A stretch of DNA of 12,144 nucleotides from Utricularia gibba (taxonomy: Eukaryota > Plantae > Magnoliophyta): the NCBI GenBank assembly GCA_002189035.1, contig NEEC01000403.1, positions 1-12,144 on the forward strand, read 5' to 3'. The stretch's first letter is position 1; every line of letters starts with the position of its first letter. The position numbers and the translations under genes are program-made. Below are positions 1 through 12,144 of this stretch, one piece after another. Below the pieces are notes generated by a model. That model did not search any database. It saw only the letters and a program-made list of their open reading frames with translations, and had not been told where the DNA came from.

Positions 1-905
1 GCGTGCGCAACACGCGAGTGTGTTCCGTATGCTAACGGCTTGACCATCATCCGATTCAGCATACTGCTCGTGCACCTTTACGAGTGTAGCCAATTTTCCG
101 TCCTCACTTTCAACCAGGTCCGATCAACGTACAAAGATATATGGGTGGTCGTCTTCTCTCAAGCATCGACACGATTCATCGGGTTGATGGTCTCTAGTGC
201 AAACTCCCACGCTCTTTTAGGCGTTCACATCCATGCGCACTACTTCCTTTTTTTTTTCCGTTGCTCGGGCCTCGCAAGCTTTACCGTTACCTTCAGGTGT
301 TCTGGACGCCTTAGCGAATGGACTGGACAATGAGACCGTTGGTCTATTATCGCTGCCGTTTAAAAATATGAGGATGCGTGGAGATTAGACCAGCACTGAT
401 GCGCACGTCCATAGAACCGTAAAGTCCAACCCATGGACTCTTACCTAGTACTTCACCCTTGATGTATCGTCAAACGATGCGAAGGGGGTACACCAGGAGG
501 AATGACTTGGTTATAACACTAACAGGATCCCATACATCTTAGTTTTTCCTATTACTTTCCCTTATGATCTTCCATGGAAACAAAGTAAGACTTACGCAGA
601 GGAGTCACGAGTTCTCTACATGGCGGATCTTGGTGCACCATCGCTACTCGTTTGAGGGTGTTTTGTTGTGCAACAAACTCAGCCAACATCCAATGAATAT
701 TAGAATGCGGCCAACGACACTCCATGTACTTTACCGATCACCAACAACGTGCGATGGAAACATTAACAATTTTGGATTCATTCTATGGAGCAGATACGAT
801 GTGGATGTGCTATCCAGCCGTTAGACGGCTACTACCCCGACCTCCTGAATATTTGGACACGAAAGTGGCATGCCACTATACGTTTGGAAGGAAAAAACCT
901 TCAAC

Positions 906-1528
906 CATACAGTTTAAAGGATATCATCTATAACAAACATACGTTGCGAGCCACGTAAGCTATTATTGAGTGGACATCATTTAATGAGAAATGATTTATT
1001 GAGTATTGAAGAACATATCGATCGTGGATCCAGAGTGTAACCACTCCTAACCCCAAGTCCATAACTCGACCACTGAGCACTTGTTAGTGTATGTGCTCTA
1101 GAGACAATCAACTCATTGGCAAATCTTATCTTATGATATTTACTTTGAATTGTGATCAAATTTATATCATTGATAAAATCCTCTACTTGATCTATGTGCT
1201 ATAGAAATTATGATGAGATCATAATGTGAGATTCTTCAAGCACTCATGATCAAGTTAAAAACTCCCTTGCTAGAGTATTTGTGAAATGAGGATATCACAA
1301 ATACGGATAAGCTGGCACACATTGAGTTCCCTAAACTATTACTAAGCTGGCATACAGTTTAAAGGATATCATCTATAACAAACATACGTTGCGAGCCACG
1401 TAAGCTATTATTGAGTGGACTTTATTTAATGAGAAATGAGTCATAGAGCACTGAAGAACATATCGATCGTGGATCCAGAGTGTAGCCACTCCTAACCCAA
1501 AGTCCATAACTCGACCACCAGCACTTGT
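906..1528. repeat. ~179-bp direct repeat (906-1084 and 1351-1528) inside monomer 1; equivalent pair 2720-2898 and 3165-3343 in monomer 2
   Basis: CATACAGTTTAAAGGATATCATCTATAACAAAC...GTCCATAACTCGACCAC..GCACTTGT occurs twice per derived monomer, 445 bp apart, but once in monomer 3. Confidence 0.95.
1082..1350 (+). mobile_element. 5'-end fragment of a probable Angela-lineage Ty1/copia LTR embedded in monomer 1
   Basis: AT-rich 269-bp block absent from monomer 3. It begins TGTTAGTGTATGTGCTCTAGAGACAAT, resembling the TGTTGG..ATGCCCTAGAGGCAAT start of BARE-1/Angela LTRs (family call from recall, not a database search). Confidence 0.65.
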
Positions 1529-1807
1529 GCTTCGAATCCACATAGCTCACGGAACAAACGCACACCTCCCCTTATAATTCGACCCCCATGGCATCCACTC
1601 CTGATGCAAAATTCCATTCTCCCTCCAGGCTTTGCAAAGAAGCGGGTAACGTGGAATGGATCGGTATTGCTTCGCAAGCAGGTCACGCCTTGCAACATGC
1701 ATACTTCATACCTTACGACATTCCAATGCCTGACCTCCGGATGCCTTTTACCCAGATTGTGGATGGAGATAGAGAAGGGATCACTTGGTTAAGCAATCGT
1801 TAAAGCC

Positions 1808-3622
1808 GCGTGCGCAACACGCGAGTGTGTTCCGTATGCTAACGGCTTGACCATCATCCGATTCAGCATACTGCTCGTGCACCTTTACGAGTGTAGCCAA
1901 TTTTCCGTCCTCACTTTCAACCAGGTCCGATGCAACGTACAAAGATATATGGGTGGTCGTCTTCTCTCAAGCATCGACACGATTCATCGGGTTGATGGTC
2001 TCTAGTGCAAACTCCCACGCTCTTTTAGGCGTTCACATCCATGCGCACTACTTCCTTTCTTTTTGTCCGTTGCTGGACGGGCCTCGCAAGCTTTACCGTT
2101 ACCTTCAGGTGTTCTGGACGCCTTAGCGAATGGACTGGACAATGAGACCGTTGGTCTATTATCGCTGCCGTTTAAAAATATGAGGATGCGTGGAGATTAG
2201 ACCAGCACTGATGCGCACGTCCATAGAACCGTAAAGTCCAACCCATGGACTCTTACCTAGTACTTCACCCTTGATGTATCGTCAAACGATGCGAAGGGGG
2301 TACACCAGGAGGAATGACTTGGGTTATAACACTAACAGGATCCCATACATCTTAGTTTTTCCTATTACTTTCCCTTATGATCTTCCATGGAAACAAAGTA
2401 AGACTTACGCAGAGGAGTCACGAGTTCTCTACATGGCGGATCTTGGTGCACCATCGCTACTCGTTTGAGGGTGTTTTGTTGTGCAACAAACTCAGCCAAC
2501 ATCCAATGAATATTAGAATGCGGCCAACGACACTCCATGTACTTTACCGATCACCAACAACGTGCGATGGAAACATTAACAATTTTGGATTCATTCTATG
2601 GAGCAGATACGATGTGGATGTGCTATCCAGCCGTTAGACGGCTACTACCCCGACCTCCTGAATATTTGGACACGAAAGTGGGCATGCCACTATACGTTTG
2701 GAAGGAAAAAACCTTCAACCATACAGTTTAAAGGATATCATCTATAACAAACATACGTTGCGAGCCACGTAAGCTATTATTGAGTGGACATCATTTAATG
2801 AGAAATGATTTATTGAGTATTGAAGAACATATCGATCGTGGATCCAGAGTGTAACCACTCCTAACCCCAAGTCCATAACTCGACCACTGAGCACTTGTTA
2901 GTGTATGTGCTCTAGAGACAATCAACTCATTGGCAAATCTTATCTTATGATATTTACTTTGAATTGTGATCAAATTTATATCATTGATAAAATCCTCTAC
3001 TTGATCTATGTGCTATAGAAATTATGATGAGATCATAATGTGAGATTCTTCAAGCACTCATGATCAAGTTAAAAACTCCCTTGCTAGAGTATTTGTGAAA
3101 TGAGGATATCACAAATACGGATATGCTGGCACACATTGAGTTCCCTAAACTATTACTAAGCTGGCATACAGTTTAAAGGATATCATCTATAACAAACATA
3201 CGTTGCGAGCCACGTAAGCTATTATTGAGTGGACTTTATTTAATGAGAAATGAGTCATAGAGCACTGAAGAACATATCGATCGTGGATCCAGAGTGTAAT
3301 GAATCCTAACGCAAAGTCCATAACTCGACCACGGAGCACTTGTCCTTTGAATCCACACAGCTCACGGAACAAACGAACACTTCCTCTAATAATCCGACCC
3401 TCATGGCATTCACTGGTTATTCAAAACTCCATTCTCTCACTAGGCTTTGCAAAGAAGAGGGTAACGTGGAATGTATCGGTATTGCTTAGGAAGTAGGTCA
3501 CGCCTCGCAACATGCATACTTCATACCTTTCGGCATTCCAATGTTTGACCTCCGGATTCCTTTCACTCAAATTGTGGATGAAGATATAGGAGGGATTACT
3601 TGGTTAAGCTGTAGTTAAAGCT
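1808..3622. repeat. Long tandem-repeat monomer, copy 2 (derived form)
   Basis: Nearly identical to copy 1 up to ~3298 (mostly 1-3 bp indels), then clearly divergent to 3622. Confidence 0.97.
2896..3164 (+). mobile_element. Same probable Angela-type LTR fragment in monomer 2
   Basis: 269 bp, one substitution seen versus 1082-1350 (GGATAAGCTG / GGATATGCTG). Confidence 0.65.
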
Positions 3623-4860
3623 GTGTGCGCAACACGCGAGTGTGTTCCGTATGCTAACGGCTTGACCATCATCTGATTGAGCATGTTGCTCTTGCACCTT
3701 TACGAGTGTCGCCAATTTTCCGTCCTCACTTTCAAACAGGTCCGATGCAACATACAAAGATTAATGGGTGGTCGTCTTCTTTCAAGCGTCGACATGATTC
3801 CATCGGTTGATGGTCTCTAGTGCAAACTCCCACACTCTTGTAGGCGTTCACATCCGTGCGCACTACTTCCTTTCTTTTCTACATTGCTGGACAGATCTCG
3901 CTACATTTACAATTAACGAATGAACTGGAGATTGAGACTAGTGGCGTATTGTTGCTGCGATTTAAATACATAGGGATGCATAGAGATTAGACCAGCACTG
4001 ATGCGCACGTCCATAGCACCATAAAGTCCATCCAATGGGCTCTAACCAAGTACTTCACCATTCATGTATCTTCAAACGATACCAGGAGGGTACACCAGGA
4101 GCAATGACTTGGGTTATAATAGCACCATAAAGTCCATCCAATGGGCTCTAACCAAGTACTTCACCATTCATGTATCTTCAAACGATACCAGGAGGGTGCA
4201 CTAGGAGCAATGACTTGGGTTATAAGACCAACATGATCCCATACTACTTAGTGTATCCTGTTGCTTTCTCTTATGATGTTCCATGGCAATATGGTGAGAC
4301 GTATGCAGAGGGGTCACGAGTTCACTCCAAGGCGAATCATGGTGCACCATCGTTACTCGTTTGAAGGTGTTGTGTGGTGCAACAAAGTCAGCCTAATTCC
4401 AATGAATAGTAGATTGTGGCCAAGGAGACTCCATGTACTTTATCGATCTCCAACAACGTACGATGGAAACATTAACAATTTTGGATTCATTCTATAGAGC
4501 ACATACGATGTGGATGTGTTATCCAGCCTTTAGATGACTCCCACCCTGACCTCTTGAATGTTTGGACACGAAAGTGGCATGCCACTATACGTTTGGGAGG
4601 AAAAAACCTTCAACCATACAGTTTAAAGGATATCATCTATATCAAACATACGTTGCGAGCCACGAAAGCTATTGTTGAGTGGACATCATTTAATGAGAAA
4701 TGAGTCATAGAGCATTGAAGAACATATCGATCGTGGATCCAGAGTGTAACCACTCCTAACCCCAAGTCCATAACTCCAGTGCCTAACCTCCAAATGTCTT
4801 TTACTCTGAATTCACATGAAGATATAGTAGAGATCACTTGGTTATGCAATAGGTAAAGCC
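3623..4860. repeat. Tandem-repeat monomer, copy 3 (older short form, 1238 bp)
   Basis: Colinear with copy 1 but lacks the 445-bp LTR-fragment/duplication block, has a 106-bp internal duplication and a ~211-bp deletion at 4776/4777, and carries many substitutions. Confidence 0.93.
4013..4224. repeat. 106-bp tandem duplication within monomer 3
   Basis: 4013-4118 and 4119-4224 are identical except two substitutions (GGGTACACCAGG / GGGTGCACTAGG). Confidence 0.95.
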
Positions 4861-5041
4861 GTGTGCGCAACATGCGAGTGTGTCCTATATCCTAATGCCT
4901 TGACCATCATCTGATTGAGACTGCTGCTTGTTTTACCTTGTGTGTCCACTTTTCCATCCTCTCTTCAAACAGGTGCAATGCAATATATAAAGAACAATGG
5001 GTGGTCGTCTTCTTTTATTCTTCGACACCAATCTATCATTG
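4861..5041. repeat. Monomer copy 4, left fragment interrupted by the CRM element
   Basis: Matches monomer positions ~1-181 (GTGTGCGCAACATGCGAG...ATGGGTGGTCGTCTTCT) and stops at the LTR end at 5042. Confidence 0.9.
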
Positions 5042-5499
5042 CGATATGACCCTTCAATCAACAAGTGATTGGCAAACCAGTTATTGGTTTAAAAGAAGCA
5101 ATCCCTCACAGAAAAGAAGTTGGCCCTTAAGGATTGAAAGATCCTTGCAACCCAAACTATGAAATGGTATCACACTCACAGAATCAAGGAAGGAATTGGG
5201 AGTGATAAACCACACACTAGACACCACAAGCAAGGCTTGATAAATCTAAGTTCTACAAGAACTCAAGAAAGGAGAATTGCTCTCAAATGTGATTACAATC
5301 AAAGTTGTCCAAAACAAGAGTAAGGCCCTTCTTATATAGACGAAGGTTTGGCCTTATTGGAAGAAAAGTAGTAATAATAATGCATTTGGTAGTAATGGGC
5401 CTTCTCTAATCCAGTTGATCCACTATGACAAGGTTGAATTCCAGGCCAAACACCTCATTGCTTGATTGATTGGCCCATAAGCTCTTAAGCACTTCTTGA
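5042..5499 (-). mobile_element. 3' LTR of the CRM element, truncated at its U3 end
   Basis: 458 bp aligning to 8489-8946 with about 29 substitutions and 2 indels by manual count. It lacks the ~111 bp equivalent to 8947-9057 and has no PPT. Confidence 0.92.
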
Positions 5500-5786
5500 G
5501 TTCACTCTTTTCACATGACTGATTCTTGCAACAAGGCTCTCCACTTCTTTTTTCCTCACAACTCCTTCATTCACGTCTTTCTTTTCACTCTCTTTTTTAG
5601 ATGTTCTTTTCCTTTCTCGTGATATCTCTTTTTTCTCCCCATACTCTCATCCCTCAACTCACCAAAAGATTTGATAGCGGTAGCAATCTTAACTTGATCT
5701 TCGTGTGCCTCTTTTGGAGATAAAGGCACCAACGTGATGGGTTTTCCTTTAATGGAAAAGGAATACTTGTTTTATAGCCATCATGG
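5500..5786 (-). pseudogene. pol: CRM post-protease linker remnant
   Basis: Translates with a frameshift as HDGYK(N)KYSFSIKGKPITLVPLSPKEAHEDQVK, the usual continuation of [11 protein letters not shown] in CRM polyproteins, then joins the LTR. Confidence 0.8.
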
Positions 5787-6137
5787 TGTTTGAGAAAGTG
5801 AGTACTCTCCATAAACTGAGGGACGTGGGCCACTATTCCTTCCTATGCACATGGTGTCAAAGAAGAGTAGAAGTAGTGAGCCCACCTCCCACATTTCTCT
5901 CAACTACTTGCAGTTATTTCCACTCCACTTTTGGGAGTTGTTAGTGAGTCGTGGATGCATCTTTCTCGCATCTAGTTAGGCTAATTTCTAGTATAAATCT
6001 CGAAGTCTTGTATTCAGTCTTTACTCAATATTATTGATCCGGTTTTTTCAGGTTATCCCTGCTTCAATTTTGCTTCTTCATCGTCGTCCTCGTGTAGTTT
6101 CTGTTCCAGAATCAATTTGCATCACTTCACTCCAACA
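5787..6137 (+). mobile_element. 351-bp solo LTR (probably Ty1/copia) nested in CRM pol
   Basis: Termini TGTTTGAG...CTCCAACA, perfect TSD CATGG (5782-5786, 6138-6142), TATAAAT at 5992-5998. Removing it restores KVIH-DGY. Confidence 0.88.
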
Positions 6138-6972
6138 CATGGATCACCTTACTATCATATTGCCAAGGCCTTCCCAAGAGTATGTGTCCAGCATGCATGG
6201 GAACTACATCACAAAGAACCTCATCCTGATACTTTCCAATTTGGAAAGCAACAAGAACTTGTTTATTGACCTTTACTTCACTCCCTTCGTTCAACCATTG
6301 AAGCCTGTAGGGATTTGGATGTTTGAGAGTAGGAAGTTGGAGTTTATCCACCATGAGAGTACTAGCAACATTTGTGCAACTACCTCCATCGATTATTAGG
6401 CTACATACCTTCCCATGTGCAAAGCAACGTGTATGGCATAAGTTTTCGCGTTGCTCCTCCATTGGCTTAGCATCCATGACTGAAGTCCTTCTTGTTACCA
6501 AACTTTTACCAATAACAGGTTGTTGTTCCCCATCATATATCTCATGTAAAGCACTTCCACTTTCACTCTCAACTTCAGATTCAACATCTCCATAATCCCT
6601 TAGAACCATGGTCCTCTTGTTTGGGCATTCTGAAGCAATATGACCATGGCCGAGACATTTGAAGTATTTGATATTTTTTGTTTGCCCAGAAAACTTAAAT
6701 CCTCTTTCCTTGTGTCGAGTATTTGAAGTGCCCTCTTTCATCGATTCTAACTTGGTTGATTTCCCAAATGAAGGATAATTTGGTTTCTTCTCCTTACTTC
6801 CAGCAACATTCCACGAAGTAGAAGGTTTTGGATGGTCTCTTTGTTGTCCCTTAGACTTTAGTTGCTTCTCAATCTTGATGGCAACGTGCAACATGTCTTC
6901 AATCTCTACATAGTGTTGCAGCTCGACCACTTGAGAAATTTCCTTGTTTAAGCCATAGAGGAATCTTGCCAT
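6138..6972 (-). pseudogene. pol: CRM gag C-terminus, zinc knuckle and aspartic protease
   Basis: ORF 6127-6972: [18 protein letters not shown], knuckle [14 protein letters not shown] (first Cys replaced by Tyr), protease IIDGGSCTN at ~6379-6390. The last codons run into the nested solo LTR. Confidence 0.93.
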
Positions 6973-7008
6973 TGTAGCTTCCCTATCCTCTGTTGTTGGC
7001 TCGAATCA

Positions 7009-7774
7009 TTAATACCTCCATTCTTGCCCATATTCTTCCACGGTTTTGCTCCCTTGGGTGAGTTTCTGCAAGTTTTGGTGTTGATCTCTTTGGTAGTGGT
7101 TGGGAATGAACCTTTTTCTCATGATCCTCTTCATTTCAGTCCAAGTGCGATTTGGTTCTTCATCATTTCGTCTTCTGTTGAGTACTATGTTATCCCACCA
7201 AGTTATGGCATAATCTATAAACTCAACAACAGCAAGCTTGATCTTCTTGGCTTCAAAATAGTTGTGACAATCAAACACATGCTCCACACGAGTCTCCCTC
7301 CAAGTAGGCATTTGGATCGTTTTTCCCTTGAAAAGGAAAGATTTTCAAATTCCTTGTATTCACTTGTGTATCTACCCCTTGGTCTTTCATCATGTCCTGC
7401 ATCACGATTTGGCCTCCTATTTCTTTGATATCTTCGTTCTATATCATCACCACCAGATGAATCATACTTATCAAAGATGTTGTTATTATTTCTCCTTTGT
7501 TCACCATGCCTTGCCTCTTAGGCCTCAGATTCCGAATCTTTTTCTAGTTGAGAATTCCTTCTACTATGGTGTGATGGAACTCTTGTTCTTCCATGGGAGA
7601 CACTATCCTCTTCTTGCTTTTTGATGTTCTTGAGAGATTCATCATGTTCCTTTAATTTGATGTGGATTTGCTCCATGCAGCTTTGCAGTCTTCTTAACTC
7701 ACCTTGCATTGCATTAAGTACGAACAACCATCCATTGCACCTGATTCTTCTGCAGGGTTGTTAGAGCTCGACAT
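7009..7774 (-). pseudogene. gag: CRM gag, N-terminal and capsid region, frameshifted
   Basis: Probable start MSSSNNPAEESG at 7774. Pieces FVLNAMQGELRRL, LKIFPFQGKNDPNAYLE and ETRVEHVFDCHNY..KIKLAVVEFIDYAITWWD..WTEMKRIMRKRFIP lie in different frames. Confidence 0.9.
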
Positions 7775-8474
7775 CCTACTACAAGTTAAAAGTGTAGACA
7801 AAAGGAAGGAAAGAGAACAATGAAAGAAAGATAGAAGTAAAAGAAGAAGGAGAGAATTTTCAAACCTCAAGTCCTCTTGAACTTTAAGACTCAATAAACC
7901 TTAAATGATCAATCTAAGTGTGGTTCAAAGAGATAACAGTGGCTAGGGTAATGAGTGGGATAAAGAAAATGAGCAATATAGGACTTGGTGATGGTAACAG
8001 TACTTATGAATAAGTAAGAGTAGGAATAGAAGGATAGAGTGTAACTTGTTGTTAACACACAAGAGGTAGGTAGATAATTGAAAAGAGTCAAAATGGAATA
8101 TAAGTGTGACAATAGACAAAGTTGTGCAATATTGACTTTTCTTTTATTTGGTAAGTAGAAGATTCAATGGATTCAAATGACTAGCTCCTTTTTTTTTACT
8201 TTTCTTGTGTGTGAAAAGTTGAAAATTCAATGAATTCAGGTGCTAACCTTCTTTTTCCTTCAACACATTTTTTTTTTTCTTTTTGCAGCAATCCAGAAGA
8301 AAAGGATGAAAGAAACAAAGATAAGAAACCCCCCTTGGTTTTTCTTTTCAGAAGAAAAGATGAGCAAAAGACAAGATAAGCAAATAAGGATAAATCTGGA
8401 CTAGTTTCTGGTTTTTTTTTTCTTTAGAACGAAACCACAACAAGATAGATAGGAGATGAAGAAGAGAAACATTG

Positions 8475-8486
8475 GCTCTGATACCA
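8475..8486 (-). promoter_or_regulatory. Primer binding site (tRNA-iMet)
   Basis: Minus strand TGGTATCAGAGC next to the LTR end. Confidence 0.95.
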
Positions 8487-8488
8487 CC

Positions 8489-9057
8489 TGATACGACCCT
8501 CCAATCAACAAGTGATTGGCAACCAAATCTTGGTTGAAAAGAAGCAATCTCTCAAGGAAAAGAAGTTGGCCCTCAAGGATTGAAAGATCCTTGCAACCCA
8601 AACTATGAAATGATACCACACTCACATAATCAAGTAAGGAATTGGGAGCAATAAACCACACACTAGACACCACAAGCAAGGCTTGATAAGTCTAAGTTCT
8701 ACAAGAACACAAGAAAGGAGAATTGCTCTCAAATATGATTACAATCAAAGTTGTCCAAAACAAGACTAAGACCCTTCTTATATAGATGAAGGATTGGGTC
8801 TTATTGGAAGAAAAGGAGTAATAACAATGCATTTGGTAGTAATGGGTCTTCTCTAATCCAGTTGATCCACTATGACAAGGTTGAATTCCAGGGCAAACAC
8901 CTCATTGCTTGATTGATTGGCCCATAAGCTCTTAAGCACTTCTTGATTATTTCTTGCTCTTGATCTAGGGATTGGCGCAACTGAAATCAATGGAGGATTA
9001 TTGATCTTGTGTCATTTGTCTTCATTGGGATGATCTGTAGCATCAATGATCTCATCA
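8489..9057 (-). mobile_element. Full-length CRM LTR (569 bp)
   Basis: On the minus strand it starts TGATGAG and ends GTCGTATCA, with TATATAA at 8778-8784, PPT immediately upstream and PBS 2 nt downstream. Confidence 0.93.
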
Positions 9058-9075
9058 TCCCCCCCTCCTTCTTTT
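9058..9075 (-). promoter_or_regulatory. Polypurine tract
   Basis: Minus strand AAAAGAAGGAGGGGGGGA abutting the LTR start TGATGAG. Confidence 0.9.
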
Positions 9076-9223
9076 AGCAGATTCATCCTTGAATCGTCAC
9101 CATCTACATCTCAAGTAACCAAGTCAGCCATATTGAATGTAGAGTGCACCGAAAACTCACCTAAAAGATTAATCTTATAAGCATTGTCATTGATTTTGTC
9201 ATTGGACTTCTTCACAAATGGAC
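9058..9223 (-). pseudogene. pol: C-terminal tail of CRM integrase from an upstream element copy
   Basis: Minus strand KINDNAYKINLLGEFSVHSTFNMADLVT*DVDGDDSRMNLLKEGGGD, matching the CRM end pattern KINDNAYKLDLPGEYNVSATFNVSDL...NPFQEGGND. The frame continues into the LTR to APIPRSRARNNQEVL (8952-8978). Confidence 0.87.
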
Positions 9224-9693
9224 TGGAGAAAGATACCGATGCCTATTGTTGCTGTGATTTGAATATATGGGGATGCATGGAGATTAGACCAGCACTGATG
9301 CGCACGTCCATAGCACCATAAAGTCCATCCCATAACCTCTAACCAAGTACTTCACCATTCATGTATCGTCAAACGATACAAAGGGGGTACACTAGGAGAT
9401 TGAACTTGGGTCATAACACCAACAGGATCCCATACTTCTTAGTGTATCCTGTTGCTTTCTCTTATGATGTTCCATGGCAACATGGTGAGACGTACGCAGA
9501 GGAGTCACGAGTTCACTTCGTATACCTCGCACAGCTCCCCACACCCCACATTCGTTTTGTTACATAGTAAAGCACTACCTCACCATAATTTATTGGTATC
9601 GCTTAGGCAGTTGATCACGCCTTGCGAAATGCATACTTCATACCCCTCACCATGAGGATAGAGAGATCACTTGGTTAAGCAATTGGAAAAGCC
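9217..9693. repeat. Degenerate monomer fragment with internal deletion
   Basis: Resumes at monomer position ~317 (AATGGACTGGA), runs to ~617 (GAGTTCACT, 9517), then jumps to monomer position ~1532 (TCG...CACAGCTC) and ends GATCACTTGGTTAAGC...AAAGCC. Confidence 0.88.
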
Positions 9694-10192
9694 GTGTGCA
9701 CAAAACGTGAGTGTGTCCCGTATCCTAATGCCTTGACCTATATCTGATTGAGCGTTTTGCTAGTGCATCTTTACTAGTGTGGCCACTTTTCCATCCTGTC
9801 TACCAGTGCGATGCAATGTACAAAGTATGGGTGGTCGTCTTCTTTCAAGCATAGACACCAGTCTATCAGTGGCTGGTCTCTATTGTCAAACTCCCATGCT
9901 CTTGTAGGCGTTGACATCCATGCGCACTACCTCCTCTCTTTCTCCATTGCTGGACAGTTCTCACTAGCTTTACCATTATGTGGTGGTGTTTCGGACTTCT
10001 TAACGAATGGACTGGAGAATGAGACCAGTGGCCTATTGTTGCTCCCGTTTAAATACATGGGGATGTGTGGAGATTAGACAAGCACTGATGTGCAAGTCCA
10101 AAGCACCATAAAGTCCATCCCATGGCCTCTAAACAAGTACTTCACCATTCATGTATCGTCAAACGATACCAAGGGGGTACGCCTTGAGCAAT
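9694..10192. repeat. Degenerate monomer copy 5, left part
   Basis: Starts GTGTGCACAAAACGTGAGTGTGTCCCG and is colinear with monomer positions 1-~503 until the solo LTR at 10193. Confidence 0.9.
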
Positions 10193-10786
10193 TGATGAGC
10201 CCGAGAAGTGTATTTAAAGAATGATGAGAAGTTTGTCCAAGTGAACACATTAGATACAAAGATGATTCCACCAGGACCAATGACTAGAAGCAAGAGCAAA
10301 ATGCTTGAAGATACACTTAAGGCTCTACTCAATACAATTGGAATCAAACATGGGCTTGAAGACATCCCATCAAAAGAGCTCAACTACTTGAAGGTGGATT
10401 TACCTTAGAGCAATGGACTTGTTAGACTTTTCTATTTCATTTAGTTTGGGCCAAGTAATGTTAGAGCCCAATCCTAGAGTATAAATACTCTAGAGATATA
10501 CTCTTTCAGGACCTTTAGTCATTTCATGTATGTTGTGAGGATTCTCCTCTTCTTTGAATGCTTGAACACTCTTAACTTATCAAGCTTTGAGCTTGTGGTG
10601 TTCTAGGATTATCTCTTCCAATCCCTCTCTCTTTTCTGAAGTGTGGCTCCTAATTTTCTTTGTTTCGAAGTCTGGTTGCAAGAGATTCATTCTCTTGTGG
10701 GTAGACTTGGGTGGGTTCTCTTCTAAGCTTCAAAATCACCTCTTGTTCGTGGGTTACTAATCTCTATAGATTAGAGGGTCACATCA
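10193..10786 (+). mobile_element. 594-bp solo LTR of a second CRM family
   Basis: Termini TGATGAG...GTCACATCA, TSD GCAAT (10188-10192) / GCAAC (10787-10791), CR-motif-like GPMTRSKSK at 10274-10300, TATAAATA at 10480-10487. Confidence 0.9.
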
Positions 10787-10907
10787 GCAACGACATGGTT
10801 TATAACACCCAAAGGATCCCATAGTACTTGGTGTATCCTATTGCTTTCTCTCGTGATGTTCCATGGTATCATTGTGAAACGTGCACAAAGGATTCACGAG
10901 TTCACTC
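10787..10907. repeat. Degenerate monomer copy 5, right part
   Basis: Continues the monomer exactly where 10192 left off (GACATGGTTTATAACACC...GGATCCCATA...CACGAGTTCACTC), then fuses to copia gag. Confidence 0.88.
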
Positions 10908-11445
10908 TATGGTGGTTCTTGTTCATTCTATAGGTCATCACAAACTGTGAATAGCTATCAGGTAGTGAGGTAAGGATCAAGTCAATATTCATGTCCTTAT
11001 CCAACACAAAACCAAGAGATGACAACTTTTCAATGTAACTCAACATCAATGTTGCATGATCAGCAGCAGAATTTCCTTCTGCCAAGCGACAATTGAACAA
11101 CAGCTTTGATGTCGTGAATCTTTCAAGTCGTGAGTGCTCGCCAAACAGATTCTTGAGGTGTGTTATCATCTGTGGGCAAGTCATCGACTCACGCTGTTTT
11201 TGGAGATCAGGGCCATCTAAGCAAGCATGATACAGCAGATAAGCTCAGCATCATCTAGATACTTCTGATATGCATGCCGAACATCTTCAGCTGCATTAGC
11301 CCTGGGTTGTGCAGGAACATCTTGCTCAAGGATGTAAGCAATCTTCTCCGAGAACAATTCTCAGATTGCGGTGCCAATCAGTAAAATTCGAGCCAACCAA
11401 CTTGTTGGACTCTATAATGGATCTCAAATTCACGCCAGAAGACAT
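10908..11445 (-). pseudogene. gag: Copia gag (UBN2/Retrotran_gag_2-type), frameshifted and 3'-truncated
   Basis: MSSGVNLRSIIESNKLVGSNFTDWHRNLRIVL / IAYILEQDVPAQP...KYLDDAELICCIMLA* / PDLQKQRESMTCPQMITHLKNLFGE...YIEKLSSLGFVLDKDMNIDLILTSLPDSYSQFVMTYRMNK. Confidence 0.9.
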
Positions 11446-12144
11446 ATCTTCAACTTGAAGAAGAGAAAGCAAACACATCATGTAGTGTTCCTTAAATCAC
11501 ATGCAACTTGTCTTTATCAAATGTGATATACTTCCACTAGGTTTTTCGAGATGGCAGTCCCCTACTGACAAACGAGAAAATCACATTTTCTTAATGGGAC
11601 AGTGTCCCATTTCATTCATCTCCACCTTGACTGTAGCCAAAAAGCTTTAATGAATGAAACAGGTAGTCATCTCATGCCAATTGTATCTCTCATACAACCA
11701 TTGTATCATTGAGCCATCAACTCTTGATGTAAAAAACTATTTACCTCAACCTTTCTTCCAATTTTGCCAACCTTGGCTTTAGTCTGAATCTAATTCAGTT
11801 AATAAGTTGATAAAATCAGTTAAGAAAACCCACTCTGAATCTAATTCAATAATTCAAACATGTCATGTGTAGTGGAGAGCTTGACGGTAGCCAACAACTC
11901 TATGCACTAAAAATGTCTTTCGTTCTCCTTATGTCAGTGGAAGGAATAAGCTTAATTATTTAGTAGGGGATTTTTCCATAGGCAACACTTGCACCATGGA
12001 TATCGATATCCTATCACATAGGAATCATGACATCCATTGCCCTTTCGTGCATAACGCATCATATCCCTTTATTTTCACACATAATGAACGAAAATCCTAA
12101 TTGACCCTAGATGCCTTGGTCACAAATAAATTATTAAACATCAT
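10908..12144 (-). mobile_element. Truncated Angela-lineage Ty1/copia element (leader plus gag), extending beyond the window
   Basis: Angela-type gag at 10908-11445. The upstream ~700 bp is non-coding leader-like sequence; its assignment to the element is by adjacency and recall. No PBS or LTR is visible inside the window. Confidence 0.75.

Follow-up and report, generated by a model that had tools for sequence, protein, structure and literature searches.

How does a unit of a tandem array come to be longer than its neighbours, and what happens to the longer form once it exists? The question is raised by a stretch of Utricularia gibba DNA of 12,144 nucleotides (contig NEEC01000403.1; this whole stretch is called the window below), in which two adjacent repeat units carry a block of 445 bp that is missing from the unit next to them. 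The initial annotation explained the block by insertion of a retrotransposon, truncation of its long terminal repeat (LTR) by a deletion and amplification of the chimeric unit. We examined the array, the block and the possible order of events with this proposal in mind, and the coordinates of all features are collected in Table 1.

Self-BLAST and a repeat search describe the first 5 kb of the window as non-coding repeat units that follow each other head to tail, and all six units recognized in the window lie on the plus strand. The basic unit measures ~1.36 kb, and when the additional 445 bp are subtracted, the two long units come to 1362-1370 bp. Identity to c1 ranges over 75-88% across the other units; in self-BLAST, c5 and c6 reach 75-84%. 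The array is an old and decayed tandem repeat of kilobase units, riddled with transposons, and not a homogeneous satellite. Because no Pfam domain is present in the monomer (zero matches for ten stop-free unit pieces on both strands) and scans of the window against Rfam and for tRNAs gave no match, nothing in these results appears to point to a function of the repeat. Further copies were sought by a protein-word search with a monomer ORF and by exact-word scans of metagenome and viral contigs with the invariant core of segment A (see below). Both came back empty, the latter in non-plant collections, where an empty result has little weight. A full-text literature search with three diagnostic oligomers retrieved no paper.

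Table 1. Features of the window: repeat units, their parts and the transposons that interrupt them
Feature	Positions	Strand	Evidence or remark
Unit c1, long form, 1807 bp	1-1807	+	self-BLAST, repeat search
Unit c2, long form, 1815 bp	1808-3622	+	self-BLAST, c1/c2 alignment
Unit c3, 1238 bp, single A, no X	3623-4860	+	
Unit c4, start only	4861-5041	+	
Unit c5, diverged	9203-9693	+	self-BLAST
Unit c6, diverged, split	9696-10192 plus 10786-10921	+	self-BLAST
Recently duplicated head, copy 1	1-1484	+	c1/c2 alignment
Recently duplicated head, copy 2	1808-3298	+	c1/c2 alignment
Tail T1, old paralogue of T2	1485-1807	+	c1/c2 alignment
Tail T2	3299-3622	+	c1/c2 alignment
A in c1, first copy of 179-bp monomer segment	906-1084	+	self-BLAST
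X in c1, foreign AT-rich block, 266 bp	1085-1350	+	33% GC, unmatched elsewhere in window
A' in c1, second copy of segment	1351-1528	+	from 1485 on, old tail T1
A in c2	2720-2898	+	self-BLAST
X in c2	2899-3164	+	alignment to X of c1
A' in c2	3165-3343	+	from 3299 on, old tail T2
Single A of c3	4615-4786	+	same left-hand context as A in c1/c2
Ty3/gypsy derivative, non-autonomous	5042-8946	minus	LTRs 5042-5499 and 8490-8946, about 93% identical
593-bp TG...CA insert	10193-10785		splits c6 between equivalent ~503 and ~498
Copia element, front part	10922-12144	minus	Retrotran_gag_2 match 10897-11244; cuts off c6

Two units carry local changes of their own. Within c3, a tandem duplication of 106 bp (4013-4225, 2.0 copies, 98% identical) is found that c1 and c2 do not have. 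In c5, equivalent position 617 is joined to ~1650 through roughly 70 unalignable bases, and the whole region of A, X and A' is gone; since c6 runs on beyond equivalent 617, this gap is a deletion in c5.

At least three LTR retrotransposons have invaded the array. The Ty3/gypsy derivative has an exact tRNA-Met primer binding site (PBS) at 8475-8486, the sole tRNA-Met PBS in the window. It retains gag, a zinc knuckle and a protease-like part, with neither reverse transcriptase (RT) nor integrase. At 8947-9202 on the minus strand, a frame resembling an integrase C-terminus (…NAYKINLLGEFSVHSTFNMADL…) runs into the 5' LTR of this derivative. Because it enters the same LTR, the LTR seems to be common to two elements, either in tandem or as a recombinant, and a search of the outer ends gave no matching target-site duplication of 5 bp. 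The 593-bp insert is flanked by GCAAT and GCAAC, a near-perfect 5-bp duplication, and probably represents a solo LTR. An open frame (…PPGPMTRSKSK…) within the first 200 bp of the insert resembles polyprotein ends entering the LTR in centromere-type chromoviruses. The copia element shows a degenerate PBS-like site near 11687-11700 and LTR sequence up to the edge of the window.

Both long units contain the same monomer segment twice. Segment A, which reads CATACAG...CACTTGT, is followed by block X, and after X the sequence returns to a second copy of the segment, A'. In c1 the two copies (906-1084 and 1351-1528) are 93.9% identical over 179 bp (self-BLAST, E 1e-74), and the repeat search gives a spacing of 445 bp between A and A' in c1 as well as in c2. 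The additional 445 bp thus consist of a foreign piece of 266 bases and of 179 repeat bases that are present a second time. Self-BLAST and repeat search therefore confirm what the initial annotation had described at this point, namely a segment beginning at 906, an intervening block, a return to 906 and a resulting gain of 445 bp in both units.

The borders of X require more care. Homology of A and A' extends through TGT (to 1084 and 1528, respectively): in A' the context is GCACTTGT followed by GCTTCG, in A it is GCACTTGT followed by TAGTG, and the left join is for this reason ambiguous by 3 bp. At the right join, ...GCTGG is followed by CATACAG. The block was originally given as 269 bp; its presence stands, but this length (1082-1350) holds only when the ambiguous TGT is included, and with the alternative start TAGTG at 1085 it is 266 bp. 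Between c1 and c2, X differs by one substitution (1310 A / 3124 T). Its G+C content is 33% against 47% for the remainder of the unit, and it has no similarity to the monomer or to the remaining window, in agreement with the earlier description of the block as foreign to the monomer. We conclude that the A-X-A' arrangement must be a derived state.

The most clearly recorded event is the copying of this structure. An alignment of head 1-1484 with head 1808-3298 shows 2 substitutions and 5 small indels (identity >99.5%), whereas the tails T1 and T2 differ in 47 of 323 columns, which corresponds to about 85% identity. The switch between these two levels is sharp and falls at 1485/3299, inside A'. 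Two long heads of such identity, ending at one sharp boundary, indicate one copying event: the window records a single long-head lineage that was copied once, very recently, by duplication or conversion. The proposal that the chimeric unit had been copied is thereby upheld, as c1 and c2 both carry the near-identical long head. Its stronger form, in which the chimera was amplified as a new repeat unit, goes beyond what the window contains, which is only two long heads, one boundary and a single event.

The simplest course of this copying can be written down. Starting with an array of the order ...H0-T1-H-T2-c3..., an unequal exchange would join the head H, at column ~161 of A', to the start of T1, and the product would read T1-H-T1-H-T2. 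A gene conversion of 1.5 kb would have the same appearance within the window. In the case of exchange, the breakpoint at 1485/3299 is resolved to a few bases. As for the small differences between the heads, 4 of the 5 indels are single G's (124, 256, 508 and 866 against 1932, 2065, 2321 and 2680), and they may represent homopolymer or base-calling errors of long reads rather than mutations.

What, then, is X? Sensitive BLAST and local alignment with shuffles, on both strands, gave no significant match of X to the rest of the window, and the best one (19 bp to 183-201, minus strand) is at chance level. It resembles neither the copia element nor the Ty3/gypsy LTR nor the solo-LTR-like insert in the window. 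The block has no open frame >40 aa, no protein domain, no TATA-like box and no PBS. A protein-word search with the ORF that spans the A/X junction was empty; so were exact-word scans of metagenome and viral contigs with the start of X, collections that are not plant libraries and are given little weight here. The idea that X is a diverged monomer tail, which would make the 445 bp a sub-repeat, was rejected at z-scores of about 0. As far as it can be read from its letters, X would seem to carry no function.

Unit c3 might be taken as a witness of the state before X arrived, and the initial annotation used it as such. The unit does have a single A and no X, but it is not a clean short allele: its A is joined at 4786/4787, after column 188 and with TC microhomology, to equivalent position 1722, and c3 is also without the final ~17 bp of A and without equivalent 1529-1721. 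An intact short junction, in which a single A would continue directly into GCTTCGAATCC, is not displayed by c3. Its history may have been a 209-bp deletion from a short unit or, just as well, one 655-bp deletion (from A to 1722) from a long unit, and the argument that the short form must be ancestral because c3 lacks the block finds no support. Only three units cover the A region, none of them an intact short unit, and they would be compatible with either order of events relative to the separation of c3.

Comparison of the A versions leads to a similar result. The A of c3 matches A, and not A', at columns 97, 99, 127 and 175 of the A alignment, and it matches A', and not A, only at the clustered columns 116, 118, 121 and 125. 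Origin of the c3 A as a crossover product of A and A' was considered and rejected, because the pattern (twice A, four times A', twice A) contains no single switch; loss of the block in c3 through recombination between A and A' is consequently unlikely. The pattern fits a unit of ancestral type that was never duplicated, and it fits equally well a sister of A, with one clustered mutation arising later in that sister's partner. Pairwise, all three versions of A are about equally far apart (6-7 differences in 134 bp), and the more diverged c5 and c6 do not span the region according to self-BLAST; equidistant sequences of this kind favour neither order of events.

Several explanations of A-X-A' compete on this ground. 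According to the initial annotation, an Angela-type copia element inserted at GCACT^TGT, X represents exactly the first 269 bp of its 5' LTR, and a deletion with its ends at LTR position ~270 and at 906 in the next unit created the chimera that was then amplified. Under this model the deletion would also have taken away the second copy of the 5-bp target-site duplication. The geometry fits exactly, X is readable as starting with TG, and the array has often been targeted by LTR retrotransposons. The TG is, however, the only LTR-like trait of what had been called an LTR-like start, and since the same TGT also stands after A' (1526-1528), it may well be monomer sequence, in which case it is no sign of an LTR terminus. 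An overlap of 3 bp is a typical product of end joining, while an integrase junction requires no overlap, and the join thus suits repair rather than integration. In the other reading, the right end of X together with the CA of the monomer would make an equally good LTR terminus, so that nothing singles out the left join as the boundary of integration. The lack of a TATA-like box, the dissimilarity to the three LTR elements of the window and the empty scans (of non-plant collections) also count against this origin. Moreover, the Angela lineage of Ty1/copia is defined by coding domains, through protein phylogeny of RT, INT and gag, and 266 bp of non-coding DNA offer nothing by which to assign it. 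We regard this scenario as conceivable but unlikely. The same 3-bp ambiguity of the left join, typical of end-joining or synthesis-dependent repair, would be expected if X were filler DNA, copied from an ectopic template during repair of a double-strand break at ~1084 with no transposon involved. Re-annealing 179 bp upstream would then produce the duplication along with the filler; plant centromeric repeats offer documented cases of microhomology-mediated repair (PMC4806543). Yet 266 bp of filler plus a duplication of 179 bp are large for this mechanism, and no donor was found, for which reasons we find filler synthesis improbable. By size alone, two direct repeats of 179 bp enclosing 266 bp would also do for a TRIM-like miniature LTR element; A and A' would then be its LTRs, and c3 would have kept a solo LTR in the form of its A. 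Here the termini fail (A has no TG start or CA end on either strand), the flanks differ (TCAAC against GCTTC/CCTTT) and give no target-site duplication, and near neither junction is there a tRNA-Met PBS within 2 mismatches, nor a purine tract before A'. We rejected this explanation, the chance of which we consider close to nil.

Two further alternatives touch not the origin of X but the reality and the age of the long units. It might be argued that c1 and c2 are an artefact of assembly in which one unit was falsely duplicated, given that nearly all differences between the heads are single-G indels, a pattern that long-read errors typically leave. The 47 differences between the tails and the two true substitutions are, on the contrary, what is expected of distinct loci, and an artefact is in our opinion very improbable. 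A weightier alternative, concerned with timing only and compatible with either origin of X, is that c1/c2 and c3 parted only after the long form had arisen; the 445-bp block would then be ancestral and c3 would have lost it by the 655-bp microhomology deletion. Exactly one deletion is required in c3 under either history. The A of c3 sides with A at four sites, and its agreement with A' is limited to one cluster of 10 bp (116-125) that a single mutation in A alone might account for. Divergence between A and A' (9-10 differences) is not below that between A and c3 (7), and the A'-type base at column 175 occurs in both old tails, T1 and T2. This last argument concerns one site only, the three sequences are essentially equidistant without an outgroup, and c5 and c6 do not reach the region. 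An ancestral long form should be reckoned with, though we would not put it at an even chance.

The explanation that we prefer, with a probability of roughly 60%, is that a foreign and probably transposon-derived remnant was trapped in the array by an illegitimate deletion and was later duplicated once by unequal exchange or conversion. Foreign DNA, most likely a transposon, would have interrupted one lineage of units at or next to monomer position 1084. An illegitimate deletion of the end-joining type would then have removed most of this DNA together with the monomer sequence that precedes position 906 in the following unit, leaving the 266 bp of X between two copies of 906-1084. Much later, one unequal exchange between sister chromatids or homologues, or a conversion of 1.5 kb, would have copied the long head a single time, with its boundary within A' at 1485/3299, and produced the two long units; of all steps, this one can be read directly. 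The array is known to take LTR-retrotransposon insertions as well as microhomology deletions, as witnessed by the three elements and by the TC junction of c3. A transposon is probably the source of X; this is a judgement of prior probability only, drawn from an array that is frequently hit, as the donor sequence was not found. If these assumptions are true, insertion, deletion and unequal exchange left the A-X-A' structure behind as a by-product.

A bolder version would hold that X corresponds exactly to the 5' end of an LTR and that the chimeric unit of 1.81 kb is a young variant spreading beyond the left edge of the window. We consider it doubtful. If it were true, the locus would offer a dated, stepwise record of the birth of a satellite variant, with insertion, truncating deletion and first duplication. 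Should the origin of X be established, the locus would become a very young worked example of how unit length changes by insertion, illegitimate deletion and unequal exchange.

Maize and Arabidopsis provide well-documented cases of the process, and the locus adds a further example; what it offers is thus an illustration of known mechanisms and no test of an open question. In Arabidopsis, ATHILA elements and solo LTRs are copied after their integration inside CEN180 arrays (bioRxiv 10.1101/2021.05.30.446350). As in that system, a foreign piece residing in the array was copied here along with the flanking repeat by the exchange or conversion machinery of the array. The differences are that the foreign piece measures only 266 bp and is assigned to no family, and that its host is a decayed repeat of kilobase units with one visible copying event. 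In maize, microhomology-mediated duplications are found in CEN10 (PMC4806543), and for the tandem repeats CRM1TR and CRM4TR, illegitimate recombination with subsequent gene conversion is given as the source (Sharma, Wolfgruber and Presting 2013, PMC3648361). The route proposed for the latter is the same as the one we suggest: an illegitimate intrastrand deletion creates a chimeric unit, which conversion or unequal exchange multiplies. CRM1TR and CRM4TR, however, derive wholly from the LTR and UTR of retrotransposons, while in Utricularia gibba a pre-existing and unrelated monomer gained a small insert.
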